Part shown: piece after piece, positions 1 through 39,074 of the stretch
Layout of the letters: each line of letters opens with the position of its first letter
How positions within the stretch are numbered: the first letter of the stretch is position 1
Source of the DNA: Macrostomum lignano
Taxonomy: Eukaryota
DNA length: 39,408 nucleotides
Direction of reading: 5' to 3'
Assembly (NCBI GenBank): GCA_002269645.1
Contig: NIVC01004649.1
Location: 1-39,408 of the forward strand
Translations under genes and position numbers: made by a program
Notes under the pieces: generated by a model
Database searches by the model: none
The model's input: the letters and a program-made list of their open reading frames with translations, nothing else
What the model was told of the DNA's origin: nothing

Positions 1-529
1 AATATTTCTGCAAGTTTTATTGGACAAAAAACGGAAGAATTTCTCACCATTGTTCATGCTCATAAAAAGAGCAAACTTGCCACCCAGTACTCCAGTGATG
101 CAAGTCTCAATCTATCTTTCATTGGAAGCTGTTGAGCTTCAGTTGGCTGCTTCATCAGTAAGAGAACAATAGGATCCACCCAAAAGATGATGGTCTCAAT
201 ACAGTCTTCCATTTGCACTGAAATTTTCATTTTTAAGTTCCATTTTAACCATCGGGCTTAGGTTTTTGTGAAACTCATGCAAACATCCATTGACGAGAGA
301 CTTACCGCTCTCTCCTTCCTCGCTACCGGCGATGTAGTCGAAGTGCACGGACAGGTACTGATCACGCGGTGCTTGCTCACCTTCCGGCTCGTCCACGGCA
401 TATCGTTTCCGCTTCACTTTGGCGCAGTCTTCACACGGCAAAAGTGGCAGCTCCTGAGATGCTGTGGCAGCCGGATGCTGCGCTGGCTCTTCTTGTGCGG
501 CCGCCTCCGCCAGCTCGCGAGGGTCTCGG

Positions 530-1330
530 GCGTCAAAGACTTGCCTCATCGCGGCGGTAGTCCTCCGAGCCCCTCCAGACTCACGGAGCGCGACAGCCCG
601 TACTGGCTGACACTGAGTCCAGACGGGCCAACGCCAAACGCCCAACAGCGAACTCTACGGGCTGTCGCCTTGGCCTCGAAACTTGCCACGGCAGATGGAG
701 AGAAGCTGCCGAGCCCGGCGTCAGTGAAGACAAGCACGTGCCGCTGGCCCGATGGGTCTCGTAGCAGCAGCTGCAGCAAGCCGTTAGCGCAGGCCCATCC
801 GCACTTGCCGCCTGATTCGGATCAGGGGCCTCGCAGTTTGTCACCGAGCCAAGCAGTCGCGCCTTGTCTGCTGGGCTCCAGCCGACGCCAGCCGTCTTTA
901 CGACACTTACTGACTGCGAGAACGTCACGCAGCATGTGGAGACATGCTGGTGGTCCAGAGCCTCTGCTAGCGATACCAGGCTGTGGAGCAGCATTGGACG
1001 CGACGATACAGTGCTAGATGTGAGGGAGACAGCTATGCCTACAGCAATCCTGCGCTCTGTGACTCTGTGCCTTTGTAGCCAGATTTTGTTGCTAGTGCCA
1101 TTTGTCATGAACCAGTTCATCAGGCCCCTGATGCTCAGCTTCTTGCCTCTGTTTGCCAGATGGTATCGCATCCGCGAGTGCTGGTTGGAAACTTGAATAC
1201 TGCTAATAATCCGGTTGGTGCATGGGTCCACTTTTGCCGCTAATTTCTTCCACATTTCATCCGCTGCATGGATTCCGGTGACATCGCTGAGTTCAGTTAG
1301 GTATCGCCGCATTTCGGGCATACTCAGGTT
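530..1330 (-). CDS. Midasin-type pre-MIDAS segment and VWA domain 2 (frameshifts near 800 and near 550)
   Basis: GKKLSIRGLMNW...KIWLQR...IAVGIAVSLTSS, CCVTFSQSVSVVK, HVLVFTDAG, RCWAFGVG, and LP..AMRQVF (midasin ends LP...LRQWF). Confidence 0.75.
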
Positions 1331-1589
1331 CGCTACTTCACCGGACAGATTTTCGTATTCGTGATATTGCGTCGTTATCTGTTCTTTGTTTAGCCCAAGG
1401 TCGTAGCCTTTATTTTCGCACTCGAGCCACTCTTCCAAAACAACCTGCCGGGGCTCGGGCACGAACTGACCGCATGGGTCTGGCTGGCTTTGCACTACTT
1501 GGGCATTAGCAGCATTGGTAATAAAGGAAAGTTCTTCAGTCTCGGGGCAGCAACGAAAGGGTTTTCTGGTCCGCTCCTTTCAATTCTTC

Positions 1590-2037
1590 CGTATTTCAGA
1601 CACCAGTCCTCTTCAATCCACAAGGCGGAGTAAATTTCACCCGAAAACTGTTGCAGAGAATCCTGGAACAGCTGGGAGCCAAAGCCTCTGTGCTGATCCG
1701 TGATTAAAATCACCCACTGGCAGTCCAATATTTTCGAATCAGTTGCTAGGAGTTCGTCTGAATGACAATGCAGTTTGTGAAACACCTTGCGACAGGTGTG
1801 CGGCATCCAGGGGGTGTTAAAGTCTTTGATCGTTGCCGGTACGTTTGCCAGGGACATGAAGCCTTCGTTGCTGATTTGAACGCTTTTGTCCCCAGTGAGA
1901 ACGATTTGAACTTTGCAGTTGTGCATTTCGGAATGTCTTACAACTCTGAATACAGCACGAGTGAGTTCATTTTCTTTTCGGCCATTGTTTTGCTTTTTCC
2001 ACAGGGAGCATTTTGTATCGATTAAAATGGTACCCTC
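1590..2037 (-). CDS. Degenerate VWA-like domain 1
   Basis: One frame reads EGTILIDTKCSL (DxSxS-like), ELTRAVFRVV, KVQIVLTG, HTCRKVFHKL, WVILITDQ, SQLFQDSLQQF, IYSALWI. This matches the VWA order of strands and helices. Confidence 0.5.
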
Positions 2038-2101
2038 GTTTCCTTTTTAAGATTTGCATCTTTATGAACTCTTGTTTCCTTACTAACGGTGCTGAAGGAA
2101 G

Positions 2102-4399
2102 TCAAATGCTGGACTTGAAACCAATTCGAGGGATCCGCTGTGAAGATAGAAGATTCCTGAGGTGGACGCTGGCTGGTCTTCTGTAAGAGCGTCGCGAGTG
2201 AATTGGAACGTGTGGGTGAGAGATCTCCACAAAAGTACCTGCTGTACTGGCTTCGTTATCTGAGTCGTCTATTCCAGCACTGAACTCTTGCATCCCAACC
2301 TCCAGCTCCGCGTCAACGTTCGATCGCGGACTAAATTTCATAACCCGACCGGTTGCTATTTCTGTCGATATATCTCCGCCAACAGCACCTTCCACTATGC
2401 TGGCATCTGACAGATGACCAAGGTGGCCCCTTAAAGGATCAAAACTGCTATCAGCTGCATCGCTTTCTTCAAAATTGGTTGCTGTCGTAGAGGCAGCACT
2501 GGGTCCTTCTGCAGCTGATGCTGGGTTTCCCTCTTTTTCTATCTTTTGTGCATGCTCTGACATGAAAGTAGAATCTGGCTTGCCCTCAGCCGTTTCTTCC
2601 GGGAACGAATCAGTCGGTATTGGCGCTTTTAGAGCTGCACCAAATGCTTCTGACTTGGCTGTTTCTTCCTGTGCAGAGGCTCCTTTACTCGCTTCTGTTG
2701 GTTTTGTTTCTTCAGTTGATTTTTCATCAGGTTCTGTCGCAGCTTCAGATTCTTCTGCATTCGGAGGTTTCATTTCGCTTTGATCTGTTTCCCTGCTTTC
2801 TTTTCTTTCTTTATCATTGATATCGCTCGTTTGGTTTGTATCACTCGGTGACTTACTTTCGGTATTCTGACCAGCTTGCTTTTCTTTTTCTGTCGGTTCC
2901 GAATCGTTTGGTGCGAAAGTTTCCTCTTCAGTCTGTAGCTGGTCAGTTTCTGATTCTTCTTGCGAATCTTTAGCGGATTCCACATCGCGAGAGGTTTCGT
3001 TCTTGTTCGTTTTCTCAGAATACGACCCCACTTCTCCTTCCTGTTCTCTTTGCTCGGAACGGGATTCTGCTGCCCCGGCTTCTTCTACTGGCTGACTCTG
3101 TTCATCACTAGTTTCCAATGGATCACTATTTGGACTGGATTCAACACATGAAGAGTCACTGTCCTTATGCTCTAAGAGCTCCTCCGCAGAAGACTCATCC
3201 TTGGGTGCCGTCCCGCCAGACTCGCTTCTTTCAGTCCCCGAGCCCGAAGGATCCGCAGACTCTGTCTGGCCAGACCCGCTTTCATTGGTTCCTGAGCCGG
3301 AAGGATCTGTAGACTCTGTCTGTCCAGACCCGCTCTCATTGGTTCCCGAGCCCAGAGGATCTGCAGACTCTGTCTGGCCAGACCCGCTCTCATTGGTTCC
3401 TGAGCCGGAAGGATCTGTAGACTCTGTCTGTCCAGACCCGCTCTTATTGGTTCCCGAGCCCAGAGGATCTGCAGACTCTGTCTGGCCAGACCCATAGCCA
3501 CCAGTCGAGGAGTCTTTTGCCTCCGACTGGCCCATGATTTGCTCGTCGGTCCCCATTGAAGGCGGAGGACTTTCAGTCAGACCGCTCTTCTCTGCATCAG
3601 CAATGGCCTCCTTGGCATTCTGAACTTTGTCCATCCACTTTTTGATTTCTTCTCCTCGCGGTCCAGCCAGGTCACTTTCAGTGGGCTGAGGATCTGAGCC
3701 TCCGCCTTCATCCAGCGAAAATCTATCAGCGTAGCTGTTAGCGATCGCCGACTTTAGCTCCTTTCTTAAATCCTCTTCCTTCGTAGTGGAGCTGAGAGCA
3801 AATCTGAATGCGCCGCTTGCATCTTTGTTGTTGATATTTGCACTATAGGACACAACTGTAGCTGCTTCTGTCCCATCCTCTTTTCCTCCAGAAATCACCA
3901 GTTCTTTCATCGGATTTTTCTCACGACTGTCCAACTCAGCTTATTTCTCGATTTCCTTCTCGTAGGCATCAATGCCGCAAATTGCCGACTGAACAAAGTC
4001 CACCCCTTTTATAATCGCGTGTGTTGCGGCACGAGCAAGCTGCAGAAGTACCTGGCAAAATTGGTAAAAAAGCCACTTGATTCCCGAGTTTGATTCGACC
4101 TTTTCCCTCATCTTCTTGATGCTGTCATCCAGCTTTTGCTCCAATTTCTTGAGAAGTTTTCGAACGCTACTGATTATTTCTTTGATTAATTTCTTTATAC
4201 TGAACGTGCTGTTCAGTCGGATGTCCCAGTCAAGAAATCTCCGCTGGTTCTCTCGTTCACCAAAGTTTAGCATTACTTCGACGGAAATAATTTTGAAGAA
4301 AGTGACCTTAAACCACGCGTAGAAGCACTTTTTGGCGGTGTCTGTCTCTATTTTGGCAGCTACTTCGATAATAAAAAATATGCTCACTTTGACGTCCAT
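2102..4399 (-). CDS. Amphipathic/coiled helices followed by an acidic D/E/S-rich low-complexity tract; in-frame TAA at 3941-3943
   Basis: KKLIKEIISSVRKLLKKLEQKLDDSIKK... is followed by EKEIEK*AELDSREK in one frame. The 610-aa E/S/D/T-rich ORF occupies the position of the midasin D/E-rich region. Confidence 0.75.
3228..3495 (-). repeat. In-frame 54-bp (18-aa) tandem repeat x5: SGSGQTES(A/T)DP(L/S)GSGTNE
   Basis: CAGACCC recurs at 3271, 3325, 3379, 3433 and 3487, a period of 54. Confidence 0.95.
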
Positions 4400-7300
4400 C
4401 AGGAATTTTAGTCCGTTGCTTTGCTCACAACAAGTGCAGCTTTGGCCCCGCCTTGCCGTCGGTGCTGCTCACCTCAAGCAGGTCGAGCAATTTAAGGGCT
4501 CTACGAGCTCACCTCCGAACTCAATCTTCTTATCTTCGCCATGAAAGGTAAAGCCTCCCCATAGTTAGCGTTCATCCGAGCCAGTTGATGGCCGCATCGA
4601 ATTTGACGCACGGTCCAATCTCATATCTTTCCGTTAAGCCTTCCGGGTTGCCTCCGCCTACGTCTTCCGGTGTTCTGACAGCTTTTTCAGTCATTTGCTG
4701 CTGACCGTCAGGACGGACGAAATTTTATTGACTCCATATTTTCATTGGCGGCGAGATAAGAAAAAAAAATGGTTGAAGCCCGGCAGCAAGAAGTCAACGT
4801 GTTCGCAAGACTTCATCAACGCCAAGAAGCTTTAGAAGATTGGAAAACCGCAGGGTCTTCTCTCGTCTTTTGAAATCGGAAGTAAGCCCCTACAGGAACG
4901 ACACGAGTAGGTTAACCAAATCTTTTTTCTTGTCATGAATCTAATGCGAAACTCAATGTCGCTCTCGAACAACTTCATGGCAGCTGCTACTTCAAAGCTT
5001 AATGCGTCTGGCGGAACGGAAATCGAGAGCTGCATCGAAGCGGAGATCAGTGTTAAAAACTTTAGACCAAAGGGCGTTGGCCAGGCCAAGTCATTTCGCC
5101 GGTTATTTTCAAGTACCTGAAATTTCTCGCTTTTTGCCACTGCTTTCGATGCTAAGCCTGCCTGAAAACTCAGCTTTGTGTTTGGCGTTTCCTAAGAATT
5201 CGGTGGGAAGATTTATATTCATCTTGGCGTCCAAGAAAAGCTTGATTATTCCTTGAGTCTTCTTTAATAACTTGCCATCTGCATCAGTCTGCTTTGATGC
5301 CTCTTCAGCTGCTTTAATGTGCACGACTCCGAAGGAGATAAAGAGCGACACGCAACCAAACAGTTCCACCGAGCCGCACTCGATGTCCAAACTAAAGCCG
5401 CTGCTTACAACGCTAAGACAGCCAGAAAAGGTTTTTCCCGTCAAGCTTAGAAAGTCGTACAGCCAATTCTGCGGCATGGTCGCCTTGAATGACAAGACTG
5501 CAAATGGTGTTTGTTTAGTTTTCTTCACGCATTCAGTCACGAAAGTTGAATCGTAGTTCATTAATTGCTTCATTTTATCAGATGCCTCGCTCAGCCTTTC
5601 ACTGCAAATCTGTTCATTCGCTTTTTTAGAGCGCAGAAGCAGCACGAGCTGTAAGTTGTTGAACACTGGGATAAGCTCGATTGATTCGACCACTTCAAGA
5701 CCGTGCCAGATTTCGCTGAGTTTCCCTTCGTATACTACGCACACTAAGTAGAAGAATTCTTTTTTCGGGAATCCACCCGTCATTCCAACCTGAAACCCTT
5801 GTGGATTTCTGCAGGCAATCGCAAACTTCTTTTCCTTTAAGTAAACTTTCACCGCGGCTCCACTTTCTTTCAGGTTGACCTCCCCAATCCGAGCAAGGGC
5901 GCTGCTGAAGCAGCTGTCCAAGGAATCCTGGTCGACAATGCTGCTGGCTTGCAGCTTGCCGTCGGATTCACCGGCATCTGCCGTGAGCTTCGGCTGAGAC
6001 TTCTTCTGAAGTGTCAGCACACCGTTCGGCAGATCCAGCACCATGCCAAGCCGCAGCTTAAACAGGTCAAACAGGCAGAACAGCTTTCCTTTCCCGAATC
6101 GCCGTCCGCAGGCGCCTTGAACGCACCGAGCTCCTCCTCGCTCTGTGGCGTCTGATTAGCTTCATTGGTATTCTTTGCTCTTTCGAGCTTCAACTTTGCT
6201 CCAAGGCAAATAATTTTAAAAGGTTTTATCTGGCCCGTAGTCTCACCAATCACTTCTAATTCGAAAGAATTCAGTGTTCTGTCGGGCTGAATCTTGGCTT
6301 CAAAATGTAAGAGCTTGAATGTCAGATCAATTTTTTTACTTAGAGATTTAACTTGCTCCTCGAGTTTGAATTTCTCGGCAACAATTGCAGCCAAATCTCC
6401 CAGGCTAAAGTCGATCTTTTGTCGAGGAACAACTATGGTCCATGGTTGCTTTATCTCCAGGGGTAGCTCGACCTTGCAGTCTACGATTCGCAGGTGCTTC
6501 ACTTCAGGTCTTCCAAGACAAAATGCGAAGTTCAGAGTCGCAAGCTTGAAACTGCTGTCAAACTTTTTATCGCTGCCCTCTTCGCCATTCGCAGACGCGC
6601 CAGCTATTTCTTGCTGTTTCTTTTCAACTCGAATCTTCAAGTCCTCGAGTCGGAGTAAGGTGCAGTTTGGAATTAGGCAAAGCCGCTGCAGTCCGAGCAC
6701 AAGTACCCAAACATCGGGTTCCACCGCCTTCGTCCAGCTGAAATGAACTCCAACATCCGTAAGTATGAGGCCAAAGTCTGGCAGACTTGTCTTTAGCACA
6801 CGGCCAAACAGCTCGTTCAGTTTGATGTCTTCCGGAAGCCTTGCAGTGCTGCCGGTTCCGTCAAAAGATTCCGGCAATTCCAACAGCCAGCACTGGCGAC
6901 CTTTTTCAGCCGGTCTGTGGAATTTCAGTTTGAGCCTACCCAGTCTAAAATCAGCCAGGGTCAGGTCAGCTGTCAGCTTGAAGTCAGACGTCGCTGAGTT
7001 GGAGTAAGTCCACAAGAAATCGATTTCAACAGATCCCAGCTTCAGTAGACTTGTGAAAGGCAATCTCAGCTCCTTGATTTTTGCCTCAAGTGTCAGTTTA
7101 TGAGTCTGACTCGCGGCGGCTTTGCTTTCTTTACCAGACTCTCCAGCTTCTGATGACCCGGCTTTGATGGAACGGCTTTCTTGGCTGCTCTTCGATGCTC
7201 CAAGCTCTGTCCTGTTCTCGTACCTCACTCTGAGCTTCTCAAATTTCACGAACTTAAGAAGTGGGACGTCAACTAGACTTGAGTTGATCTTCAGCAGTTC

Positions 7301-10264
7301 AGCAAAGGGTTTTATTAGTTCCACCAGAGTAAATTGGGCTTCAATATGAGCATTCAATGTGAACTGCATTGAGTCCTTGTCTCTTTTAACTTCTGACACG
7401 TAATCTAGGATGGGCAGAGTAAGGAATTGGATTTTTCCTTTAAGCGAGACCTGAAAGTGCCTGTCCTGATCGAAACTGGTTACTTTCATGCTGAATTCCG
7501 AATCTGTGAGCTCAATCTTCATCAGGCCTTTCTTCAATTTAATCAAGTCAATTGTCATCGCCAGCTCGCAGGTTTTCTCTTTGAAGTCTAAATAGCCACT
7601 GACGAGCTTGTCAAGATTGGTTCTGACCAGCACTTCTGGTATTGCCTCGGCTGACACTTCGAAATTCTTAGACACAAACGTTTGAAGACTGAAAGTTCCT
7701 GTACCATTTTGACGCGGCAAGACCTTCAACTCGTTGCTGGATGTCAAAACAAATCTCGAGCCATTGTCTTCACATTTTAGTAGAAGCTGACAATCAAGAA
7801 TGTCGAATACGGCATAGAAAGTGCACTTCGTTGGGCTTTCAGTTCTTATCTGCACACAGAAGGCTTTGCCTGCTAAGAGCTTTGAGACTCTGAATGAGTA
7901 GCTCTTGGTCAGAGTTTCTAGTAAGAATCTCTTTAAGCTGTTGTCGAAATTCCACTCGATATCAACAGCTGTTTCGGTAAACTGCATTACTGATGGAACA
8001 CCGTAGTTGGACAGGTCAACACCCCGCCCCATGCATTCTGCCAGCAGGGACACTACGTCAGTACTTGAGTAGTGCGTTTTCAGATCGCACTGACTGACTG
8101 CCCAATGCTGGTCGTTGATGGGGTAGGAGGCGGACAGAGTTGGAGTTTTCAGCTTCGCGCAGTTTCCCAGCTCCAGAACCATTGACAGACTTGGATAGCG
8201 GAGCATTTCGTCAATGAGGGTGTGCACCTCTCCTCTGCTGGTGCTCAGCTCTATTTCTGTAAGAGTCAACATAGGGCTGAGGCTGACGGGCTTCATATTA
8301 AGCATCATTTCTAATTCTTTTGGCTTCGTCCAATCGTTCCACTCCATCGAGTAGTTGCATTTTTCAACCATGACTCCTCTAGTGGCTTCATTCTCTCGCG
8401 ACAGCCGGCTCGCTACAAGTACAGAAAGGTCGAACGGCTCAATAGATTTGTCATCGGTTTGTAGCTTCCAACAAGTTCTTTTTTCTGCATTCCTATCCGC
8501 TGTCTGACACTGCAACTTGTTCTCATGCTCACACAGTAGAATGCTGAAGTGTCCTAAGTTCTGTCCGTGCAGAATGAGATCTCCCTCAATCAGGCTGCCG
8601 CACCATTTCTGATGCGCGGCCTTCCTTCCATGGTTCCGCAACACCATGCTGACTGACCGCAGCACAAGCTGGCTATCAACCTCGGAGTGAATGTCAGAAG
8701 AAGCTTTTGCTGTTAACTTTAGTTTCCATTTTGATATGTCAATGCGAATTTCCACTCCGCTGATTGGCACATTCGGGAACGGCTGCTGCACCTCCAAGTT
8801 CATGTCCTTCATTAGCTTGAGCAAGAGGCTTCCTCCATCATCTTTCGCCTGACTGGAAGAACAAAGCGTTAGTTGCAGCTGCTTGGACTTACCGGCCCCT
8901 GTTTCTTGTGCTCGTGTTATTTTTAAATCAAACTCGATGCCTAAAAGCGACAGCAGATCCATCTTTCCTTTTATGCGCACGACCATGTCCGACGGCTCCT
9001 TGCCCTCGATGACCAGCTGGGCCTCGTAAAACTGCATACTCGCTGTGTATTGATTCTGCATCTCGAATTTGGAGATTTGCGCTTCCATGCTGACTTGGCC
9101 TGATGAGTCAACCCGAAAGCTCTCCACACGATTGATCTGAGACTTTTCTGACAAGCCTGCCACCTCCTCGTCGGAGGCTTTGAAGATTTGCTTGATAAAC
9201 ATACGAAGATTAACTTTTTTCGTTTCCGCTATCTTCGATTGAAACTGAAGTTCGGCGATAATATCCGATGAAACTCTCGCGAGCTTGATGCCGAACATGC
9301 TCAAAACTCCCTTCACCTTGCACTTCCAATGCCCACTCGACTCGTGAAGATGCAGCTCTACTTCCCCTATGCTGAAAGGAAAATTTCGATTAGGTAGTTC
9401 GAGCGCTCGGTTTTCTGGCGCACTTATTATGACTCGCGCATCAGACTGCTGCTCTTTGATTTCCATGCTTTGTACCGATAAAGTCAAGACCTGCTTAGCA
9501 GAAAACCAACTTATGAAGGCCAGCGACTCAGGGACCTCTTCCAAGCAAAAAGAGATTATGCTGATTATCTTTGTGCTGCACTCAGCCTCAAAAGGGTCGA
9601 TTTTTAGCAGCGTTTGCGACATGTCGATTGTTCCTTTAAAAGTACTTTTCTTTTTTGATTCCTTAACCTGCATCTTGCCCGTTAGTAAAACAGTTTTCGT
9701 GTGTTGAATTTCCAGTTGAACGTCTTCGAAACTGAACAACTTGAAAGCCGGCCATCCATAATTGATTTTTTCATCGAAAGTCAGCTTAAAGAAGTTCGAG
9801 TCTTCAACCGCAGCAATCATAATTCTGTTGCATATTTCTTTTGCTCTTTCGTTCCAATATGGAATTTTGGTGGGCAGAAAATTTCTGAAAATAAAAACAT
9901 CGCTCGGTTTCAAGAGTTTGATTTGAAAGAAATCATCTCCCGAGGAGTTGGACTGAAGGCTGAGGTCGACCTCGTTTCCTTTTCTTGTATCTCCTGAGCT
10001 AAGCACAGCTTTTAGTTTGGCAGAGAAAACTCGCCTCTCCATATCAATAGAGAGTTTTCCGTGCAGATCCGACATCTTTACTTGGATTCCAAGAAACCGA
10101 TGGCAGTCAGCTGACTCTACAGCAAAACTGATATTTGCGAAGTCTTTTGAGCCACGGAGTAACAGTTTGTACCGCTGAGCTACCAATTGAAACTCATTGG
10201 TTTTGCTGCTTCCAATTTTGAATCTGGTATTGTGATAACACTCGCTTATTGCTCTAGTTAAATC
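4400..10264 (-). CDS. About 1,900-aa beta-strand-rich repetitive region of the giant protein (frameshifted near 6090, near 5120 and repeatedly in 4400-4930)
   Basis: ORFs of 1417, 311 and 102 aa show alternating hydrophobic/polar strands punctuated by short helices (VNLRMFIKQIF, FSLQTFVSKNF, FTLVELIKPF, IKLNELFGRVL, FSLGDLAAIV). It is in frame with the upstream part once the 950-bp insertion is removed. Confidence 0.7.
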
Positions 10265-11214
10265 CAATGGAGAGTTTACTACTTCTGTTTGCTACTTCTG
10301 GGTCAACTCCAGTGTTTTCCAAAATGAAGTTCTGGCCATCAGCTCCTGCACTGCAGAGCTTCTCGCCACTGGCGTTACTGGTAAGAACATCATTTTCCAT
10401 TCGGACAGCCAAGCTGCCTTGCACGCCATCAGTGGCTGCAGCACCAACTCTGCTACAGTCCTTGACTGTATCAAACTCCTCAATGTGTTGGGTTCCGCCA
10501 ACAAAATTACCCTTAAGTGGGTTCCGGGGCATGTGGGGATCCGAGGAAATGAGTTGGCTGACACCCTTGCAAAAGTTGGTGCCTCCGGCTCCTCTCTCGG
10601 CCCCGAACCTCTTGTCCCGATCCCTGGCTGTGTCATCGACTCGCGCATCAAAGCGTGGATCAGGACTCAGCACCGCTCGACTTGGGCGAACCGCACGAAC
10701 TGCAGGCAATCCAGAGGCGCTGTCCCTCAGCCCTCTCACCAGCTCCGGAAGCTCCTCTTGCGCCTCTCGCGCAGAGACATCCGGGCTGCCACCATGACCC
10801 TCTCTGGTCACGGCTGCTTCTCCAGGCACCAGTACCTGCAGGGCAACGCCACCAACGCCACCTGTAGTTTCTGCAACTCAGGTGACGAAACCGCTGAGCA
10901 TTTCGTCAGCATCTGTCCCGCCTTCACGCGGGCCAGACTCACTTACCTCGGGCCACACACATCTATTACTGAAGCGTGCAAACCCGAAAACTTTAATCAG
11001 CTCATGCGCTACCTTCGGGCCACCCGCAGGGCTGAACTCTCCTTTCCAGAGAGCACCATAGCTGCTGGCGACACTGGGGGACCTCCCTGGGCGGCGCCAA
11101 CCCTCCGTCCATAGCGACGCGTCGGCCGTTCAGGGACTAGCGGAATGGGCGCCCGCGCCTTCCCGCTGTGTCCCCTCCGGGACAGCCCTGCAGCTAAGTC
11201 AAGTAAGTCAAGTC
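10265..11214 (+). mobile_element. 5'-truncated non-LTR retrotransposon (LOA/R1/I-like clades): RNase H, CCHC knuckle, 3' UTR and (TAAGTCAAG)2 tail
   Basis: An open frame from ~10260 to 11114 reads SVFQNEVLAI...FHSDSQAAL...LKWVPGHVGIRGNELADTLAK (non-LTR RNase HI) and LSGHG...CSFCNSGDETAEHFVSIC (CX2CX8HX4C). It is GC-richer than its flanks. Deleting these 950 bp restores the host frame EKEQTDLTRAISEC. Confidence 0.9.
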
Positions 11215-13248
11215 TGTTTGCTCTTTTTCATTGCTAGAAAGATGAACTGGAATGTTTCCCTCCGCAAAGAGACCAATTCTAGCCTTGAATTCCCACATCG
11301 GCTTTCCTTTCTTTACTGTCATACTGAAGTTGCTGTCCGCGAAGTAAACATTTGCACTTTCACCGCTACCGTCTTTCAGCTGGTACTCTATGAGCTCGGG
11401 ATCCGAGATAGCAGTAGTTCTGCAGAGGAACTGGTTGAACTTCAATGATTTCACTACACTTGGCCCATCGAAATGTCTCAAAAATTTTGTAGGAACAGCA
11501 TTCTCCAAGCCAACACTTCCTTGTTCCAAATGAATATTAACAACAATGTTAGACCCACCGTATGAGCAGCAGAATTCCCAACTGAAATTAAGTGCTTCCT
11601 TTTCATTACTGGTAAGGTCACCGACTACTTTCCACAGGAAGTCTCCAGCCTTATTGTTGCAAAGCAAGTGCCGACACTTCAGTTCACTCTCGAATGGCAA
11701 AAGTATGTTGGTAATAGCAGGCTGAAAGTGTTCGGAGTGGGACAGCTTCACTTTTGCATGAGCCTCTGGATCCCTCTGCAGTCGGCTGATGGCACAGCCC
11801 ATGCTGCTGGTTACGCTCTGGATTTCATCGCCTACAAATTGGACAAGAGCTCTCTCTGCAGACTTCGACTTGCATTTCATTAAGACGATAATATCCATTA
11901 GCTTTCTGTCATGAATTGCCTCAACTTTTTGAACGGATTTTAAATTGAATCTGGGCGAGAGAATTCGTCCAGACATGTAGTACTCCTCTTTGTACTTCAA
12001 CGACTTCGACATCATTTCGCCCACCTGACATCTCAGCGTCTCATCAAAAATGTCTTCCATGAGACTCGACGCATCAAGCAGCATTCCATTTTCAATAAAA
12101 AATAAAATGTGTCTCAGATCTCTTGCGGTCACTTGCTCCCTTTTTGCCTTTTCTGACGTTTTAAAATTGTTGATGAGACGTCGAACGATGGAAGCAATTT
12201 CGTTGTTGCATAGAGTTCCATCTCTTAGCGGCGCGAACAGGTCAGGAAAGCAGTCCGTTTGCGGATCCAACTTGGGACAGAAAATCTCAATGCAGCGGTT
12301 GCGGAAAGATTCAGACAGCTGAAAGCTGCTACTTCTACCGATTGTTGCTGTGCAGATGAGAGCAAATCCAGGTTTCGGATCGATTCCGCCCTTCGGTCCG
12401 TCAGTGAGAGCCACTTCATGGACGTACAATCGCTGGCCCGACTCGCCAATGGAATTGAGCCTCTCGATCACCTCTGGTCTCGCGTGGTCAACATTGTCCA
12501 GCAGGATCCAGTTACCATTCTTCATCGACTTTACTAGAGGCCCGTCAACAAACTGAAAGCTGTTTTTGGAGCCACTGCTGACCGGGGAGAAGCCGCCAAT
12601 GAGGTCGCAGACGTCAGTATCAGCATGAACCGCAACAGTGACCAGCTGCTTGCTGCACCGCCGAGCCAGCTCCGCAACTGCGCTGCTCTTTCCGGAAACT
12701 GGAGGTCCCAGTAGAAGTAAGATTTTACCACTTCCAATCGATTGTTGCAGGAGACGCACGAGTCTGTCGGACGCGTCGCAAGGATTCAGCCTCTGACTTG
12801 AGTGTAAGAAGTCCCCGCGGCTGGTAAAAGCTCTCTTAGCTGTTTCTTCTGGAGACTCGCAAACAGCTAGTTTGCTTATCAGCTCCTGGGTTTCGGAACT
12901 ACTGGAAGAACTACATTCGCAGTATACAATACCAAGAGCTTCTTTCACAGTGTTATGCGCGTTCAACAAGCCGACAACCTTTTCTACATCTCTAAGGTTG
13001 AATTTACGATCAAAGTGGCCAGACGGGCATGCGTGATCTTTACAGCTAGCAACCATTTGCCAGTGAAATGAAGCCACTGCTTCAGTATTCGGACCAAATT
13101 CATTTCGAAACTTTTCGATTATTTCTTGCGTCTCTTTCTCTCCGATGACGTCCACGCTTACCTCCGTTAGCAGCTTTGACAGAGCTGGCGGCAGCTCCTG
13201 GCGTCCTCCGCCAGAACTTGCCGGGTTCATCGCGCACACAAACTGCAG
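11215..13248 (-). CDS. Start of the very large last exon: end of AAA5, AAA6 and post-ring segment, cut by a retroelement
   Basis: LQFVCAMNPASSGGGRQELPPAL resembles the midasin ATMNP motif. AAA6 has GPPVSGKS, FQFVDGPLVKSMKNGNWILLDNVD and SFRNRC. The ORF stops at 11194, inside the retroelement tail. Confidence 0.85.
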
Positions 13249-13386
13249 CTGCAATGCGACATGTTATAGAGAACAGAGTTTTACAGATTACACTTGACTA
13301 AACTTTCTGTATACAACTAGGAAACCCTAATGATGAATAACTCAATTTTCTATAATTTCAACAGCGTTGTGTCAATTGCTTCTTAC

Positions 13387-13451: not shown

Positions 13452-13540
13452 CTAAAATAATTTCAGAGAACACTGGCAATCAAGCAAATGACATAAAACG
13501 ATAAAATGTACTTCTATTAAAAGCGATTTGTTCTGCTTAC

Positions 13541-16500
13541 CAATAATTGTGCTCAGAACATTGCTGGGAGCCAAATTAATTTCGTCGAATAAAATAACGG
13601 CTCCTTGATATTCATCGGGACTTTTCGGTTTTCTGCCCGCCATTCGAGCAGAGTCGGCCACTGCTGCCTGCTCCAGAATTGCACCCTCTCTGAATTGAAA
13701 CGTCATTTTGGTAGCTTTAGTTCCCGAATTCGAGTGCGCCGTTGGAACAAATGACCCAAATAGGTCTTCTTGAGAAAGATCACTAGAGCAGGAAATTCTG
13801 ATGAACTTCTTTTTGAGAACCGATTCTGCAAATATCCTCGTGATTTGGGTCTTGCCAACTCCCGGAGGTCCAACGAGGTTGACCACTGATTCAGTGTAAT
13901 GAGCAATTAGCAAGTGGCTAAGTACTTCTTTTGCCCGTCGGGTTACTGTCAGATCCTGACCCACTCTTTGAAACTCCTGTTCTGAGAATAGCGATGCTTC
14001 AGACAGAATTTCGTTTGGACTGTCACTTTGTGGAAATTCCTGCTTCAGGGCGAGACTAAAAGGTGATTTGCAACATTTTGGAGGAATTTTTGCAAATGAT
14101 GCCATGTTGACTAGGCTCTTCACACTCAGAATTCCATTTGAGAGTTTCAAGGCTTCGCTAAGGCCACGGTCGATGTCTTCCGACAAAGAGGAAGGGATAG
14201 ACGATTCTCTGCTCAGGATATCCCGAAAGAAGACTTCAGCCTCGCTGCCTCTGCTCACATCTGTCAGCTGAGGATCTCGCACATGAATCACTGTGTACCG
14301 CGACCTCATTGAGGGCGAGATGTCTTTGTCCGTTGGCAAAGAGATTGTGGCTATTAGTTTAAAGTTCACGCTCAAAGCGATCGGAGCATCAAACTGATGA
14401 GGATGAGTAAAGCTGGGCTCTAACTCGGTCACGCTGTTGAGGCACTCAATAACTGCCTGATCAGCAAGGTTAATGTCTCTCAGGAAGGCAATTCCACCGA
14501 AGCGAATATTTCTCATGATTCCCCTCTCACAGAAAGGAAAAATCTGAGATCCCGATGAGCAAAGGGACAAGTTTTGCAATGTTTCATGCGCGAACGCTGC
14601 ATCAGAGAGGAGGCATTGCTGAGGACAGCCGATAAAATCAGCTGAGTGCTGCTTCAGTATGTCGCAAAACTGACTTGACTTGCAGCTCTTCCATCTCTCT
14701 ACTGCAGGTGATTGCTTGAATGGGGCTGGTAGTTCGTTTGTAAGTCGATTTCTAAGCTTGGAGCAAGTGCTTTCGAAGTACGATGTGCATTTACTGAAGC
14801 TCTTTGCCTTGCTCGGATACCGCGTCATCAGCAACTGTGCAGCTGGATTGGCGCAAGTCTCTTCGAAGGACTCCGCTGAGTGCGGCTCGATCCCGCCAAA
14901 CAGATCTCGGGTCTCGGTTAGATCCGACATGTACAAAGTAGTCAGTCTGCAAAGCTCAGGAGCACCAAAGTCTACGATTTGAGTCAGGTGGCGCACCATC
15001 GTTGCTTTAAAATTCGTCCGGCCTTCGAGCACCACGGGCTCAGCGAAGTGGAGCGCCAGTGCAAGCTTGCAAAGGCTCAGCTGTTCGCTCCTTATCATGG
15101 GCTGCGGAAGGCTTTTCTGCAGCGCTTTCAGCTTCACAGACACAGTTGCCGACACAGCTGCATCTCGAAAGAAAATTTCAAAGAGCCAATCGTTTTCGAC
15201 GCATTCAATTTTGCAGTCCAAAACTGCTGCTTGAGGTGGAAATAGGTCCATCAAAACGGCAACGTGTAGCTTCACCTTTTCCAGCCAATTTTCTGCGCTC
15301 AAATCTTCCGTAATGGTGAGTCGTCTCACAAGCTTTAAAAGAGTTCTCAAGGTTGTTGAGTTCGATTGGTTGTGGTGACCCTGCAAATATTTAACAAGCT
15401 CTTGGATTCGAGTTCTCATCTCCGAGCTTGATAGCTCGCTACTAAAGAGATTTTTTGCCACATTTTTCATGAATGACCTTGCTCCGTGGTATAGTCCTGA
15501 TAGACTTTTTATTTCGCTGCTGGGTTTGTTCTGCTTCATCGAGTCTGCAAAACATGCTACTTTTCCGTAGAGGATGTCGACGATCTCATCGCGAGTGTAA
15601 TCTGGCACCGAGTACTTCACCAGTCTGGCCAGCACAGGTTCTGGAAGGCACTGTCTTCCAACATATTCTGTCGGATTTTGCGTACCCACAAAGGCAAACT
15701 CCGGGTGAACATCAAGCCATTGTTGTCGAATCGAGCAACGAAATTTGCTGCCACCGCTCAGAAGAGGCGTCAGATAGCTCGTGACTTCGGGCGATGCCAA
15801 ATTAAGCTCGTCCGCAATAAATATGCTTCCTTCTCTCATGGCCTTGCTCAGCGGCCCTTCTTTGAACTTGGCCTTCGTTCCATCAGGCAGATAGCAGCCC
15901 ATTAGGTCAGTAACAACTGTGTCCTTGTTGAACAGAAATATAACTGGCCTGGCCGCATAGCCTAAATGATTGCTCACTAGCTTTACAAGCGATGTTTTGC
16001 CTACTCCGGAGTGCCCTTCCAGCAGCACGGGAATCTTCATTCTGAGGAGAACCATTAACAGGCCAGCCAGTTTCTGTCGAGACTCCCCAAGAGTGTACAC
16101 TGGACTGTCAAGAATAACATTCTGTGTCCATTCGTGTTTGCATTCTACGGACGACTCAAGCACTAATTCTGCAATGCTTTCAACTACTTGAAACCAGTCA
16201 TAAAGAGAATAATTTTTGCCATCTAAAGCGATAGGCTTCTTGGCCAAGTAATTGGTTCCGTTTACGAATTGGGCTATCTTCCCGATCGAGGCGTAAATCA
16301 GTTTACATTTTATCGTCGAATCTTGTTCGCGCATCGGCAAGTGACGGAACATCAAGTCCAGAATTCTTCGAGCATTGTTTCTGCTCATTCGATTCGCGAT
16401 AAAGGATTCGACATCCGAGCTCAATATGTTTTCCGGCACGTCAAATATGACGAAGCGACTGAGGAACGACTGGGCCCAACTCGAATAGTTCGTTCTGACG

Positions 16501-16719
16501 CTGCTGACTGAATGTGGCGAGCACAAAGAAGCTTGGATCAACCGGCACCATCTTGCCGTCAATTAGATAGCGGCGCTCTGGCCCTGTCTCCAATAGTGCG
16601 TTCAGAGACTCCAAGACTGCCTTTTCTACCAAGTTAATCGACCTGAGTACCAGGCATTTTCCCTCTTTGATAGCTCGAGCTACTGGTCCGTCAACCCATT
16701 GGAATACGGCTCCTGAATC
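13541..16719 (-). CDS. Exon: rest of AAA2, AAA3, AAA4 (with insert), most of AAA5; one +1 frameshift near 16475
   Basis: AAA3: GHSGVGKT and FIADELNLA. AAA4: GRTNFKAT and FLRDINLA. AAA5: GPPGVGKT and ILFDEINLA. Removing one base from TTGGGCCC (16472-16477) joins FVLATFSQQRQNELFEL to (A/G)QSFLSRF. The exon ends at donor G|GTAAG (13541/13540). Confidence 0.85.
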
Positions 16720-16819
16720 CTAAAATGCAACATCAAAAATGATGTCAAAGATAAAAAGATAAGGTACTCGTACATGAGTTTTCGAGAGCTACGGTAAATA
16801 AATAAGTACAAAAGCTCAC
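16720..16819 (-). other. 100-bp phase-0 GT-AG intron
   Basis: GTGAG...ttgcattttAG. Splicing gives GQFQPQ|DSGAVFQWVDGPVARAIKEG, which matches the MoxR/midasin F.W.DGP motif. Confidence 0.85.
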
Positions 16820-19411
16820 CTGGGGCTGAAACTGTCCCACCAGATCATCAGTTGATGTTTCAGAATGGCAATAGTATTCCTCAAGTTCGATGTTTCTCTT
16901 CTTTGCCCAAATCCAAATGGCGGTGAATTTTCCCGAGAAGCTTTCCCCGACCAGCATGCCGGGCCTCTTCGTGTCATGACAGAGATCAAGATACTCCATA
17001 GTGTCGCTGTAGGTGCTGAGTACTGCCACTTCGCCAATTCTCAGGTCGGATAGATTTTGGGACACCTGCTTGGGTCCGAATTCCATTTGCAAACTTTCTT
17101 GAACAAGCGTATGAGTTTCTTCAGCTTGCGAAGCAGTATTTTCGCTGTGCCGAGAAAAAAGACACATGAGCCGGTTTGTCACTTCCTCGGGCTTAGAATT
17201 GATAATAATGTCTTGAGCATGCAGCAAATCTCGAAGAGTAACATGCAGTTTATCTTTGAACTTCCTGTAGATTGAAATCAGTTTATCGGCCATTTGAGTA
17301 TTGCCGTCTGAGCATCTGCCTTTTAATATTTTTTCGACATCATCATCAGGCAGCTTTGAAAAAGTTAAGCGGACAAAGTGGCTCATAAGAGACTTTGAGA
17401 AACGAAGACTGTCGAATCCAAAAACAACGACATTCGAATTTTGACAAAGGAAAAGGCGAAAGTTCGGGTGGCGTCGGTAGCACAGACATCCATTCTCCGC
17501 ATCTGACTGGCCGGCGATGAGGCTGTCCCGAATTTGCAGCATCCCTGTGTCCAGAACGTCCTCCAAAACCCGCAAAACAGCGTCACTCGCCAGATTGGCC
17601 TCGTCCAACAGAAGCCAATAGCCGTCCCTGACTGCTCGGGTAAAGATGCCTGGCTCGAACCGGAACTGCGATCCGGATCCCGAACCAGCGAATCGAACAC
17701 TCCCGAGTAGGTCTGCCGCGCTGGTGTGTGGTGACAGGGTAAATCGCAGCAGCGGGGCGCCGGAGATGGCAGCGCAATACCGAACTGAGAACGTCTTTCC
17801 TGTGGCTGGTTCGCCTTCAATAAAGACGGGCATGTTGGAGTTGATCAGCAGTAATAGGCGCTCAACATTTTCTTTGGTCCGGTCAGTAAATACGAAGTTC
17901 ATTGTTTCGTGGCTCTCAACCGCTTGTTTCATGCTTTCTGAAATTTCCGATGGAACACTTTCTAGACTTTGTCTTGGCAGTCTTATTCGCAAGTGATCGT
18001 CGAAGAGCTCCTCAACTTCTAGCTCTCTATTTTCGTGGATACTCAGAAAGAGCTCCTGTACAAAATAATTTTCTTGAGGTAGCTTTCCTTGGAGTTTCAA
18101 ATGCTTCGTAAGCTTCTCGTGGCTGAACTCAGACATCAGAGTATCCATGTACTTTTTGTCACTCCTTTTCCCTGCTTTGATGAATGGCAGAAATCTGTTT
18201 TTGTCTTTATTTGCTTTAGTTTGTTGTTGCTTTTTCGCAGTCGGCTGTGTAATACCAACAGGTGTGGGTAGCGGTCGACTAGACCTCACGCTCCACCTAT
18301 TGCTTTTGCTTTTCTTAGCCACCTGCTGCTCCAGAACAGTCACCTTTTGATCCACTGAGCCTATGATAATGTCAAGACATCGCGCGTCCAACACCTCATC
18401 TGGCAAAGCGACCTCATCGGAATCTTGCTTTAACTTCCGGATCTGAATCACTGACTCTTCGGATGGGTTCACCAAATAGTAGGCGTTCTCGAGAGGATCC
18501 GTGGCCAGCCTTATTGGAGCATCGAGTGCTGCTTCACCGGCCTGAGTGACGTCCCAGTCAACAGACAGAGCAATCACATCGGTCGCGGTTAAGCTGTCGA
18601 CAATACAGCCCTCGGCTTTGAAAATGGCATCGATTCGGTCACTCTGGTGACCAAGCCGGGCGGTGCATAACTTCCAAACCCGCTGATGCAGAACGACCAT
18701 GCGAAGGAGAAGCTCATCATTCAAGTTAACAAAGACAGCGCCTTTAACATCCGATCGACAATAGATGGTTGGAGTTTGTTCTTTCAGGGGTACTAGATAG
18801 AATTGCATTCGGTTCGAACTGTCCTTAGCAAATATTGTGGCGAAATCGGAATTCTCTGAAACCTGATAGTGAAGCACCGATCTCAGGCTCAACTTGTGCT
18901 CTAATCGAAGGTCATGCTGGTCGAAACCAGCTTGATTGTTCTTGTAAACCCTGATTCCAGCCCAGTGGTGAATCAGAGTGCTTTCGGTTACTACAGCAAA
19001 AACATCGGTGCTAAGCCACACTAGCTTTAGCGCTTTCTCAGCCTGCAACGAGTGCACAGCAACGGGAGACCATGGTGAGCTCGAGGCAAAGTCGAATACT
19101 AGTACTCGATCGGCAGAGTTTCTTCGAACCACAACCGCAAGCCTCGAAGTCGTATCGTTCGGTACGGTGTGAACAATGGCGTCATTGCCACACTCGGGTA
19201 TGACGAATCGGCGAAGCGTGTAAGATTCCGGGTCAAAGACAGTCGTGCAGTTCACTTCAGAGCCCTTCAGTCCCAGAATATCCGGTAAACTGTACGAACT
19301 GTGGATAACGGCCGAAGTCTTCGTGAAGAACACATCGTGCAGTTTATAGTTCTTGTCAGGACCGACCACGTCAAGTCTGAAGGGGAAGTTATCCCCTTCC
19401 ATGCCTGAGAG
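16820..19411 (-). CDS. Exon: clathrin-terminal-domain-like propeller, AAA1, and the start of AAA2
   Basis: AAA1 has Walker A GEPATGKT, FRFEPGIFTRAVRDG and Walker B WLLLDEANL. AAA2 has Walker A GESFSGKF and STDDLVGQFQPQ. The exon ends at donor CAG|GTGAG (16820/16819). Confidence 0.85.
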
Positions 19412-19585: not shown

Positions 19586-20580
19586 ACTTCATCCCAGGTC
19601 ACTGCACCCCATCCCAGGTCACTGCACCCTATTCCAGATCACTGCACTCCATTCCAGATCACTGCACCCCATCCCAGGTCACTGCACCCCATTCCAGATC
19701 ACTGCACCCCATCCCAGGTCACTGCACCCCATCCCAGGTCACTGCACCCCATTCCAGATCACTGCACTCCATTCCAGGTCACTGCACTCCATTCCAGGTC
19801 ACTGCACCCCATCCCAGATCACTGCACCCCATTCCAGGTCACTGCACCCCATCCCAGGTCACTGCACCCCATCCCAGATCACTGCACCCCATCCCAGGTC
19901 ACTGCACCCCATCCCAGATCACTGCACCCCATTCCAGGTCACTGCACCCCATCCCAGGTCACTGCACCCCATCCCAGGTCACTACACCCCATCCCAGGTC
20001 ACTGCACCCCATCCCAGATCACTGCACCCCATTCCAGGTCACTGCACCCCATCCCAGGTCACTGCACCCCATCCCAGGTCACTGCACCCCATCCCAGATC
20101 ACTGCACCCCATTCCAGGTCACTGCACCCCATTCCAGGTCACTGCACCCCATCCCAGGTCACTGCACCCGATCCCAGGTCACTGCACCCCATCCCAGGTC
20201 ACTGCACCCCATCCAGGTCACTGCACCCCATCCAGGTCACTGCACCCCATCCCAGGTCACTGCACCCCATCCCAGATCACTGCACCCCATCCAGGTCACT
20301 GCACCCCATCCAGGTCACTGCACCCCATCCCAGACTGCACCCCATCACCAGGTCACTGCACCCCATCCCACCACCATTCCAGGTCACTGCACCCCATCAC
20401 TCAGATCACTGCACCCCATCAGGTCTGCACCCCATTCACTGCAGGCAGTCTGCACCCCATCCCAGATCACTGCACCCCAATCCCAGTTCACTGCACCCCA
20501 ATCTCATGTCACTGCACCCCATCCCAGGTCATTGTGCCCCAATCCCAGTTCACTGCAACCCATCTCAGGTCACTGCACCT
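19586..20580. repeat. 20-bp minisatellite (ATCCCAGGTCACTGCACCCC), ~50 copies, degenerating rightwards
   Basis: Direct reading. Variants ATTCC, CAGATC and CACTCC occur, and units shorten to 19 bp or become irregular after ~20200. There are no spacers. Confidence 0.97.
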
Positions 20581-25072: not shown

Positions 25073-27051
25073 CTTAAGAATCTCAATCCAGAGAAGTTTC
25101 TTTTTTTGAGACACTCAACTCAAAGATTCGGATTGCTTTGAAAAAATGAAAACAAAAAAATCTACCCCTCATAATATGAAACGGCTCTAATGTTGAGTTT
25201 GACATACAAATCTGGATTGGCTCATTATCCATAAGAGTTTTCAAACGTGGATTTTCAGTAAAAATCGCAACAGCCCAGTCAGCACCTGTTCACCCGCTAA
25301 AATTAATATCAGAAAGGTCTATAAGGCAAATCAAGCTTGAAATCTGGATCAGTAATCAGGATTATATCGACATGGGATAAATATATATGAGAGCTCCATC
25401 AGATTTGGTCCCAGTTTGAGAGGCTGGAGAATCTGGGGAGCGGGGATTTAAGAAAAATGAGCGGGGCCAGTATTTTATAGAAGCTGGCAAAAGAAGACCC
25501 CGGGAGCATAGAGGAGAAATCCCATAGCATAATCCCCCCCGCCAAAGCCGAGTTCAAGTCTTCCACTGTCCGCGCGGAGCTGCGCAGCGGAAAAGCGAAT
25601 TTTTAATGACTTTAATTAGTCTTAAGTCTTCCAGCCGGCTCGGCACAGCGGCCCGATGAAAGTGAATTATTCAGAGCCTGGAAGATCCCCGTCTCCCTGA
25701 AAGACCGAGCTCTCTCTGCCCATCACCCTTCGAATGCTTGCGGTGCCATCAAACAGGCGGGCCGGGGGCATAACTCACCTGTAATTAACTGATAGGAGGA
25801 GGAGAATAGGCCTTCCCACTTTTCATCCCGCCTCGAAAGCTCCATGGATCCGACCCAACCCCCCCCCCCCAACCGGAGCGGCTGCGGTCTCCCCGGGGAG
25901 ATTCCGGTTGTAGCTGAGTTATGGCCGCGTTTCCTGACGGCAGCTCGGCCTTGTCCGGCCATTTCTACTCTAATTCACCTGAGATTGCTCCGGCCGAGGC
26001 TGTGAAAGCTAAAGCGGACCAATTTGCCTAATGGCTTATGGAAGCCGAGGCCATTAGTTATGCAGCCGCGGCACCAGCCGCGGAGCAACAGGGATCGGCG
26101 GGTGTGGCGAGTTCCTGCCCTGACAAATCTCTGCACAGTGTGTAGATAAAACACACACTTGCTGTATATATCCTTTATAGCTTGTATAGCCCCCCCCCAC
26201 TTTTAATTCTGAGTAGTGGTGGCCTTTCAGCTAGATCTGGAGCGATCGCAATTCACCGCCACTCCCCAATCAAGATCACACAAAGATTTATTGCTCCGCA
26301 CAGTCACTCCGCTTCTTTCATGCTCAGATTCAGCTGATCAACCGAATTATAACACCTTGCGCCGTTTCTTCTCTTTCAATCTAAAAATAAAAGCAGATTT
26401 GCTCAATTCTTCAGACAGAGAGTGTGCAAATATTTATCAACTACAAGCGTATATTCATAGGTTGGAGATTTCGTTGTGTCAATTTTCTGTCGCGTGGCAG
26501 AAGAGCAGTGAGAAAAAAGCAATGAGTTGAGAGGCGCAATCAATTAGATTGAATTGTCTTCGGGCAAATATATGAGAGCTGCCAATGGGTGTTTGACGAT
26601 GTTTGACCCGCCTTGGCTCACAGCATGAAATTCAGGCCCCAACAGTTTGGGGTCTCTTTGGTCTCTGTAAAGGAAATATTGATGAGGATTTGGGATTTCT
26701 TTGTAGGGGTGTATAGGGAGCGCTCTCGCATTGGCTGGACCGCAGTCAGACTCCTCCCCCTTAGAGTTTTCCAATTCCAGCTATTCCTCATCTCTGCTCT
26801 ACCCCTCAGAGCCTGAGCAGCCTCGCATTCTCGCTCCGACACTGGGGAGAAGCAGAAATTCTTAGGGGGGGGGGAGTTTGAGTCCGCGGGCAGGCCGCGA
26901 CCAATGGGATCCTGAGCAGGAGCTTTGGGAGGAGCGGAGGCTGGGACTCCCATCGGAAATAGCTGCATCACCTGTCGGCTCTGGCATCGAATTTCGACTC
27001 GATTGTTCAGGCTCTTCCTTCCTCAACCGCCTCCGGCCTCCAGCCTCCAGC

Positions 27052-33600: not shown

Positions 33601-33854
33601 TTAAACGAGTCAAGTTTAAAAATTTTTAATCTACAGTGAAACAAAAAATTTTAGTGAAAAGCACAAGCAATGGCAGCTATTGATTGTTACGTCAAAAATT
33701 TACAGTTTTTAAATTTAGTATAAGTTTTATTTTCATGAACAGAATAAAGGGGTAAAGTCTGTTAACGTGCAGCTGCGCAAATCCAAATCTGGTCACTGGC
33801 CAGCCGTGTGCTCGATGACCACGAACACACACGTGTAGCCTAATACATGTACTA

Positions 33855-39060: not shown

Positions 39061-39074
39061 AAAAATTCTATCTT

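Follow-up and report, generated by a model that had tools for sequence, protein, structure and literature searches.

A conserved beta-sheet arm probably replaces the helical linker in a spiralian paralogue of midasin

The window analyzed here is a whole stretch of 39,408 nucleotides of the flatworm Macrostomum lignano (contig NIVC01004649.1 of assembly GCA_002269645.1, positions 1 to 39,408). Its minus strand carries the large open reading frames (ORFs) of a giant midasin-like gene, which runs from 19402 to about 196. The product probably represents a spiralian paralogue of midasin in which a conserved beta-sheet arm replaces the helical linker. In the M. lignano protein, an N-terminal region of about 500 amino acids (aa) comes first and is followed by six AAA modules, a beta-rich segment of about 2,280 aa, a pair of terminal helices, an acidic tether, and finally a conserved C-terminal head. 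This whole order is that of one giant polypeptide, encoded almost without introns. The frame-corrected gene product was taken from the window sequence, and a second copy of the gene, L001, was substituted wherever the window changes frame. In the proposed arrangement, the units of the beta-rich segment would stack into a long beta-sheet rod, hydrophobic on one face, in the place that the helical linker occupies in midasin. The rod would connect the ATP-driven ring to the tethered head as an extended arm or scaffold, and its length could be tuned through module duplication. Its apolar face may be buried in a second layer or by curling of the sheet, or it may be free for hydrophobic cargo. The term rod was chosen from topology and repetition because no structural neighbor was significant.

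Rea1/Mdn1 was the best solved relative of all three ORFs that encode AAA modules, and the ring thus belongs to the midasin type. The first of these (16745 to 19402, minus strand) encodes the N-terminal 500 aa, AAA1, and AAA2; it matched Pfam AAA_5 at residues 525 to 627, and midasin was its best match in PDB (E, 1.6e-87). AAA3, AAA4, and AAA5 are encoded by the ORF at 13452 to 16562 (minus strand), with two stretches of AAA_5 (E, 3.1e-35) and midasin again the best PDB match (E, 2.6e-58), ahead of NorQ/CbbQ. The third ORF (11194 to 13254, minus strand) bears AAA6 and a following part that looks helical by eye (11683 to 13254; AAA_5 E, 1.7e-17). Its best PDB match was Rea1/Mdn1 (E, 6e-83), with the best stretch on Rea1 residues 2143 to 2248. 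Six P-loop sites were placed on the minus strand: the Walker A motif GEPATGKT of AAA1 at 17792 to 17815, GESFSGKF of AAA2 at 16925 to 16948, GHSGVGKT of AAA3 at 15993 to 16016, GRTNFKAT of AAA4 at 15000 to 15023, GPPGVGKT of AAA5 at 13848 to 13871, and GPPVSGKS of AAA6 at 12685 to 12708. Those of AAA2 and AAA4 are degenerate. Pfam AAA_5 was confined to the three ORFs, and no family was found in the ORFs downstream. The only other PDB matches of these ORFs at E values of ≤0.001 were the single-module proteins NorQ, CbbQ, and CobS, and neither dynein nor RNF213 chains were among them. The six AAA_5 modules and the Rea1/Mdn1 matches (E, 2.6e-58 to 1.6e-87) support the statement in an earlier note, made from the letters of this DNA, that the protein is midasin-like.

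The earlier note had also placed a beta-rich segment of about 1,900 aa at 3941 to 10264. These limits hold most of the segment; its true start is at about 11682, and its total length is about 2,280 aa. The start of the segment (11213 to 11682, minus strand) shares the continuous ORF 11194 to 13254 with AAA6, and the homologue P0003 of the annelid Owenia fusiformis starts at the equivalent point. The main intact exon stretch, of about 1,400 aa, lies at 6100 to 10296 (minus strand) in the 1,417-aa ORF 6014 to 10267. It has no Pfam match, and its homologues are P0003 and P0002, a second M. lignano protein. The C-terminal third of the segment (4200 to 6100, minus strand) is read in L001 as one ORF of 689 aa, with 32% identity to the Owenia protein over about 470 aa. 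It holds the conserved motifs AWPTPFGL (5048 to 5083) and GPC.KFD...WGGF...EFGG. All four motifs that had been quoted for the segment and its end were found on the minus strand: WPTPFGLKFLTL at 5048 to 5083, EVSSTDGKAGPKLHL at 4431 to 4475, KKLIKEIISSVRKLLKKLEQKL at 4130 to 4195, and LLQLARAATHAIIKGVDFV at 3992 to 4048.

The hydrophobic pattern of the segment is that of beta-strands. Over 2,150 aa, the mean beta-type hydrophobic moment was 0.365, compared with 0.291 ± 0.009 in 200 shuffles (z = +8.5), so that the alternating hydrophobic strands described earlier go beyond chance. The alpha-type moment of the same segment was not above that of the shuffles (z = −1.2). The adjoining AAA6 part showed the reverse pattern. 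The short periodic helices that had been described along with the strands were present in both AlphaFold2 models, one every 120 to 170 aa or so, but the F.L..L type of pattern by which they had been recognized was not enriched (13 occurrences, versus 10.8 ± 3.2 in shuffles). Examples of these helices are LRMFIKQIF, LVELIKPFAELL, LNELFGRVL, and LGDLAAIVAEK. According to the models, the segment may be made of roughly 15 units of 120 to 170 aa each, and a unit would consist of about six long, amphipathic, hairpin-joined beta-strands followed by a short helix.

A longer repetition was superimposed on these units. When the family profile was aligned with itself by hhalign, positions 516 to 977 matched positions 1023 to 1531 (probability, 99.1; E, 4.8e-19), a duplication of about 450 to 500 aa. 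The internal duplication was revealed by profile self-comparison only: a phmmer self-comparison at the level of the window gave weak repeats (best E, 0.018), and a blastp self-comparison gave none. With module queries, phmmer found a module of about 320 aa twice in the M. lignano protein and twice in the Owenia protein. The first super-module copy, located by the profile self-alignment and by phmmer module matches, has about 460 aa (7895 to 9280, minus strand). The second, located by phmmer and the profile self-comparison, has about 510 aa (6233 to 7759, minus strand), and the best-conserved 320-aa module lies inside it at 6131 to 7120.

Two AlphaFold2 runs were made. The first covered 1,200 aa with a four-row alignment and gave a predicted local distance difference test score (pLDDT) of 38.6; at this low confidence, DSSP assigned 35% strand and 11% helix. 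The second covered 581 aa (6143 to 7885, minus strand) with a six-row alignment that included internal module copies. Its mean pLDDT was 64.8 and its predicted template modeling score (pTM) was 0.56; 237 residues had a pLDDT of ≥70, and the conserved module reached 88. In this model, DSSP assigned about 50% strand and 10% helix. There were 26 strands of 5 to 15 residues, most of them of 8 to 15, with short turns between neighbors, and the short helices recurred every 140 to 170 aa (LVELIKPFAELL at residue 187, LNELFGRVL at residue 356, and LGDLAAIVAEK at residue 495). A unit of the model thus had about 140 to 170 aa with roughly six strands (five to seven) and one helix. In strands of at least eight residues, 71% of the positions on one face and 25% of those on the other were apolar. 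Two disordered inserts, acidic or Ser rich, were located in loops. The modeled part is neither helical nor a short-strand solenoid, two of the folds that would have spoken against the proposal of the earlier note. The post-ring segment is therefore beta rich instead of helical, as had been proposed, and it has no similarity to the midasin linker.

The same model bears on another reading, in which discrete, globular beta domains for protein binding (sandwiches, small barrels, or PH- or lipocalin-like folds) follow one another along the segment and form no continuous sheet and no groove. The helix-delimited units of 120 to 170 aa would be of the right size for domains, and some blocks of the model are separated by breaks of low pLDDT. 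However, the strands are up to 15 aa long and all neighbors are connected by hairpins, the pTM of 0.56 over 581 aa suggests a defined arrangement between units, and Foldseek at E values of ≤1e-3 found none of the solved small beta domains, with template modeling (TM) scores of ≤0.29 for small targets. A string of discrete domains is therefore improbable.

The search of the 581-aa model against PDB with Foldseek gave no match at all at this E value threshold, and VPS13, ATG2, BLTP, and TamB were absent from the top 50. The best matches, none of them significant, were TonB-dependent receptors, porins, LptD, VDAC, and ApoB100, with TM scores of 0.1 to 0.3. Nothing significant was found in BFVD either, where a mimivirus Chorein_N protein ranked eighth (E, 0.24; TM score, 0.18). 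Foldseek is insensitive for twisted rods. As far as the model can be relied on, this outcome would point to a long, amphipathic antiparallel meander but to nothing beyond that.

Sequence comparisons gave a similar result. A search of PDB sequences with the family profile at E values of ≤10 found no match, including to Rea1/Mdn1 chains. Pfam scans of four family members at E values of ≤10 gave chance-level matches only; Chorein_N, VPS13, ATG2, Apt1/Fmp27, AsmA, TamB, and DUF6603 were all absent. With no relative in Pfam or PDB, the arm constitutes a large new domain family. The suggested link to DUF6603-type giant proteins was not borne out by these scans, and literature searches found nothing relevant on DUF6603, on midasin-like proteins, on a link between midasin and lipid transfer, or on such a family.

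The earlier note had compared the segment to the repeating-beta-groove (RBG) proteins VPS13, ATG2, and AsmA/TamB. Membership in this family was not supported by the Pfam, PDB sequence, and Foldseek results, including the absence of any RBG structure from the top 50 and the low TM scores (0.1 to 0.2). In the functional version of the comparison, which goes back to the earlier note, the arm would form an open hydrophobic groove of the RBG kind for binding and conducting lipids, as in VPS13, ATG2, BLTP1-3, and AsmA/TamB, and would be coupled to the midasin-type ATP ring. This is possible but doubtful. The strongly amphipathic nature of the long strands (71% versus 25% apolar) agrees with it, and so do the pure hairpin meander with one helix per unit of about 150 aa and disordered inserts in the loops, the variable number of modules, and the amphipathic helices at the C-terminal end. 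Beta-sheets that face lipid, namely those of outer-membrane barrels, LptD, ApoB100, and the mimivirus Chorein_N protein, were the nonsignificant neighbors in Foldseek, and the roughly 15 units are near the 6 to 17 RBG domains of known bridges (PMC7613979). On the other hand, a unit here has about six strands and a helix instead of five strands and a crossing element, the N terminus of the array is fused to AAA6 and has no chorein-like cap, and a two-layer sandwich would suit amphipathic strands equally well. The segment may have the function of an RBG bridge but does not qualify as a member of that class. It is unlikely, though conceivable, that the midasin-type ring and a groove of about 15 RBG-like units form a motor-assisted or gated conduit for lipid or other hydrophobic cargo, which would have arisen in spiralians independently of VPS13, ATG2, and the BLTPs.

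The first 1,200 aa of the 1,417-aa ORF were compared by HMMER with 1.84 billion representative proteins, and there were only four matches (P0001 to P0004). P0001 is a partial M. lignano protein, 98% identical to the ORF and a near-identical allele; P0002 has 2,472 aa, and the Owenia protein P0003 has 3,952 aa. P0004 is a 688-aa fragment filed under a Kangiellaceae metagenome-assembled genome (MAG). Because its ORF fills the 2.1-kb contig end to end (L003; JAZBNS010000684.1; 2,100 bp; 46% G+C), it is probably animal DNA that was mis-binned into the MAG. The horizontal acquisition considered in the earlier note was not supported, since the scan gave no credible bacterial or fungal relative and animals only. 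Among metagenome contigs (JGI), a two-sequence profile of the C-terminal region gave 125 pattern matches, none of which was confirmed. Protein searches with a word prefilter, made with the 1,417-aa ORF and with four-sequence and C-terminal profiles, returned P0001 or nothing and missed P0002 to P0004, although these were in the collection; a word prefilter is unsuited to the beta-segment family.

Over 2,152 columns, the Owenia protein and the corrected M. lignano sequence align collinearly (23.6% identity; E, 3e-128), and the Owenia protein runs on into the acidic and C-terminal regions. At the Owenia locus (CAIIXF020000010.1; L002:1-10001), the homologue is annotated as two genes on one strand: P0003 is preceded by an AAA_5-rich gene, with a 2,544-aa product, whose end lies 48 bp upstream. 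By eye, no clean donor/acceptor pair that would join the two gene models was found, so that their status as one gene in Owenia is drawn from adjacency. A paralogue in M. lignano (L004; NIVC01000300.1, 13496 to 25567) has the same order of N-terminal region, AAA1 to AAA6, and beta segment. It carries about five tandem copies of the super-module of about 500 aa (the equivalent of corrected residues 1624 to 2133), two of which are identical in P0002. This array is either a very recent amplification or an assembly artifact. The shared layout of the Owenia P0003 locus and L004 indicates that the architecture is conserved in two phyla and two paralogues. Judged from these sequences, the combination of ring and beta-rich arm likely marks a lineage-restricted midasin paralogue, known to date from one flatworm and one annelid.

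The window copy of the gene is damaged or badly assembled. A truncated fragment of a non-long-terminal-repeat (non-LTR) retrotransposon, 916 bp long and probably 5′ truncated, lies antisense within the coding exon (10297 to 11212, plus strand), with an RNase_H Pfam match in ORF 10419 to 11114. It interrupts the beta-rich segment and brings an in-frame stop codon. The fragment has the tail (TAAGTCAAG)x2, and a target-site duplication of 10 bp, TCTGTTTGCT, lies on either side of it at 10287 to 10296 and 11213 to 11222. It is absent from L001, whose contig (NIVC01004179.1) encodes P0001 and matches the window at 98 to 99% identity over the full length of the gene; by this identity, L001 is an allelic or homeologous copy. 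Compared with L001, the window changes frame between about 6090 and 4414 through more than 17 single-base deletions, clustered at 4414 to 5112 and at about 6085 to 6126. Introns were ruled out as the cause of the frame changes at 6100 to 4400, which are 1-bp indels relative to L001 with junctions that lack GT-AG. Over the broken stretch, L001 has its uninterrupted 689-aa ORF, and it carries 1-bp deletions of its own where the window is intact. The deletions are probably long-read assembly errors and not decay, because the indels differ between the copies, are mostly single-base deletions, and are each clustered where the other copy reads through.

These lesions, namely the retroelement in the exon and the more than 17 single-base deletions, are what would favor a nonfunctional segment, whether a decaying pseudogene, a repeat-derived sequence, or a horizontal acquisition from bacteria or fungi; the presence of the homologue P0004 under a Kangiellaceae MAG would fit the last of these. 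Several observations oppose it. The indels differ between copies that are 98 to 99% identical, as assembly errors would, and the frame of either copy, the window or L001, is open where that of the other is broken. The ratio of nonsynonymous to synonymous substitution rates (dN/dS) between the window and L001 was 0.22 (1,248 comparable codons, with 14 synonymous and 11 nonsynonymous changes), and collinearity with the annelid protein extends over about 2,100 aa. Apart from the ORF-filled 2.1-kb contig, no bacterial or fungal match was found among the 1.84 billion representatives, and the C-terminal profile found no confirmed relative in the JGI contigs. A nonfunctional or acquired segment is thus highly improbable. 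The coding sequence is real, as indicated by the collinear Owenia alignment, the same layout in the paralogue, and the dN/dS value.

Downstream of the arm, a terminal helix pair was located at 3941 to 4195 (minus strand), one helix charged and amphipathic and the other long and hydrophobic. The amphipathic helices that had been noted at the segment end were recovered: the alpha moment of the last 150 aa was above that of the shuffles (z = +2.8), and the pair is conserved in Owenia. An acidic, Ser/Thr-rich region of low complexity follows at 2102 to 3934 (minus strand), with 20.7% Asp plus Glu (D+E) and an isoelectric point (pI) of 4.3. Within it, Tandem Repeats Finder detected a coding tandem repeat of 54/108 bp at 3215 to 3493, with units of the type SGSGTNESGSGQTESxDP. 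The conserved C-terminal region of about 600 aa (196 to 2050, minus strand) is 30% identical to that of Owenia over 530 columns (E, 9e-54). By eye it may be VWA-like, with strand-helix patterns that end in FTD.G.GS (GTILIDTKCS...WVILITDQHRGF and IAVGIAVSLTSS at 1013 to 1048...VLVFTDAGLGS at 705 to 737). Pfam gave no family for this region, with VWA absent at E values of ≤1, and there was no PDB match with the single sequence or with a two-species profile. The DxSxS MIDAS motif is absent, and the VWA-like positions read VSLTSS/IALTQK.

Several of these results weigh against a beta-sheet arm in a midasin paralogue. The proposed three-dimensional arrangement depends on a single model of medium confidence (pLDDT, 64.8) built on an alignment of six rows, and the larger model was poor (pLDDT, 38.6). 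No structural neighbor was significant in the Foldseek searches of PDB or BFVD. The C-terminal head was not detectably of the MIDAS/VWA type, which weakens the analogy with the midasin mechanism. This allele may be nonfunctional, given the exon retroelement and the frameshifts. In addition, the protein is known here from its DNA sequence alone.

The N-terminal region of about 500 aa ahead of AAA1 (residues 1 to 498, in ORF 16745 to 19402) is 32% identical in the paralogue L004 and has no Pfam or PDB match; it is a second uncharacterized conserved portion of the protein. No clear transmembrane helix was found in the protein (the top 19-residue Kyte-Doolittle mean, 1.78, falls within beta-like sequence), and no signal peptide was seen by eye in the M. 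lignano protein. About 190 bp upstream of the first ATG, a 20-bp unit (CATCCCAGGTCACTGCACCC) is repeated 50 times at 19590 to 20579, and this array creates long spurious plus-strand ORFs. Farther upstream, where the window is richest in GC (56% G+C), an ORF of 465 aa has one C2H2 zinc finger (26878 to 28275, plus strand). Twenty-four tandem units of 21 bp at 30035 to 30541 overlap ORF 30031 to 30762, which has no Pfam match. The G+C content is 28 to 33% across about 33000 to 39408, compared with about 47% over the gene.

Among known systems, the RBG proteins (VPS13, ATG2, BLTP1-3, and AsmA/TamB/YhdP) resemble the arm in that units of about 150 aa are strung into very long arrays, in their long amphipathic antiparallel strands with a helix, their weak sequence conservation, their variable number of units, and the amphipathic helices at one end. 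An RBG domain has at least 150 aa and consists of a five-strand meander plus a sixth element, helical at its start, that crosses back (PMC7613979). The concave face is hydrophobic and the convex face hydrophilic, amphipathic helices cap the ends of multimers, and the first domain is homologous to Chorein_N (PMC7613979). The present segment differs in having no sequence match or significant structural match to these proteins, about six strands per unit (in the medium-confidence model), no Chorein_N cap, and an array fused to an AAA+ ring. If an open apolar groove were present, the protein would be the first bridge-like lipid conduit joined to an ATPase and would bear directly on an open question about bridge-like transfer proteins, namely what drives the directional flow of lipid. 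No RBG protein is known to be fused to an AAA+ ring. The beta-belt of ApoB100 and outer-membrane beta-barrels, the nearest Foldseek neighbors although nonsignificant, are likewise long antiparallel amphipathic meander sheets. Their shapes do not match (TM scores of 0.1 to 0.3), and unlike them the M. lignano protein lacks both a signal peptide (by eye) and any clear transmembrane helix and is fused to a ring of a cytoplasmic or nuclear type.

RNF213 (mysterin) and the dynein heavy chain are also giant single-chain rings of six AAA modules with long non-AAA arms. Their arms are helical, and they were not among the PDB matches of the AAA ORFs at E values of ≤0.001. As RNF213 acts both on lipid droplets and on lipid A, it is a precedent for a ring ATPase that deals with lipids. 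The closest known system is midasin (Rea1/MDN1), which likewise has six concatenated AAA_5/MoxR-type modules in one chain, a very long post-ring segment, an Asp/Glu-rich region, and a conserved C-terminal domain. In midasin, the linker of about 1,700 aa after AAA6 is all helical, whereas here the modeled segment has about 50% strand and 10% helix. The M. lignano protein also differs in its extra N-terminal region of about 500 aa and in a C-terminal region without a VWA/MIDAS match or DxSxS. MDN1 is universal in eukaryotes, whereas the present family was seen only in a flatworm and an annelid. RNA interference knockdown is established in M. lignano. Midasin is usually regarded as a single, universally conserved machine for ribosome assembly. 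The beta-sheet arm would point to a paralogous lineage in which the six-module ring, acidic tether, and C-terminal head were kept and the helical lever was swapped for a modular arm of about 2,280 aa. The ring-plus-tether design of midasin would then prove to be open to rebuilding with a mechanical element of an entirely different kind.

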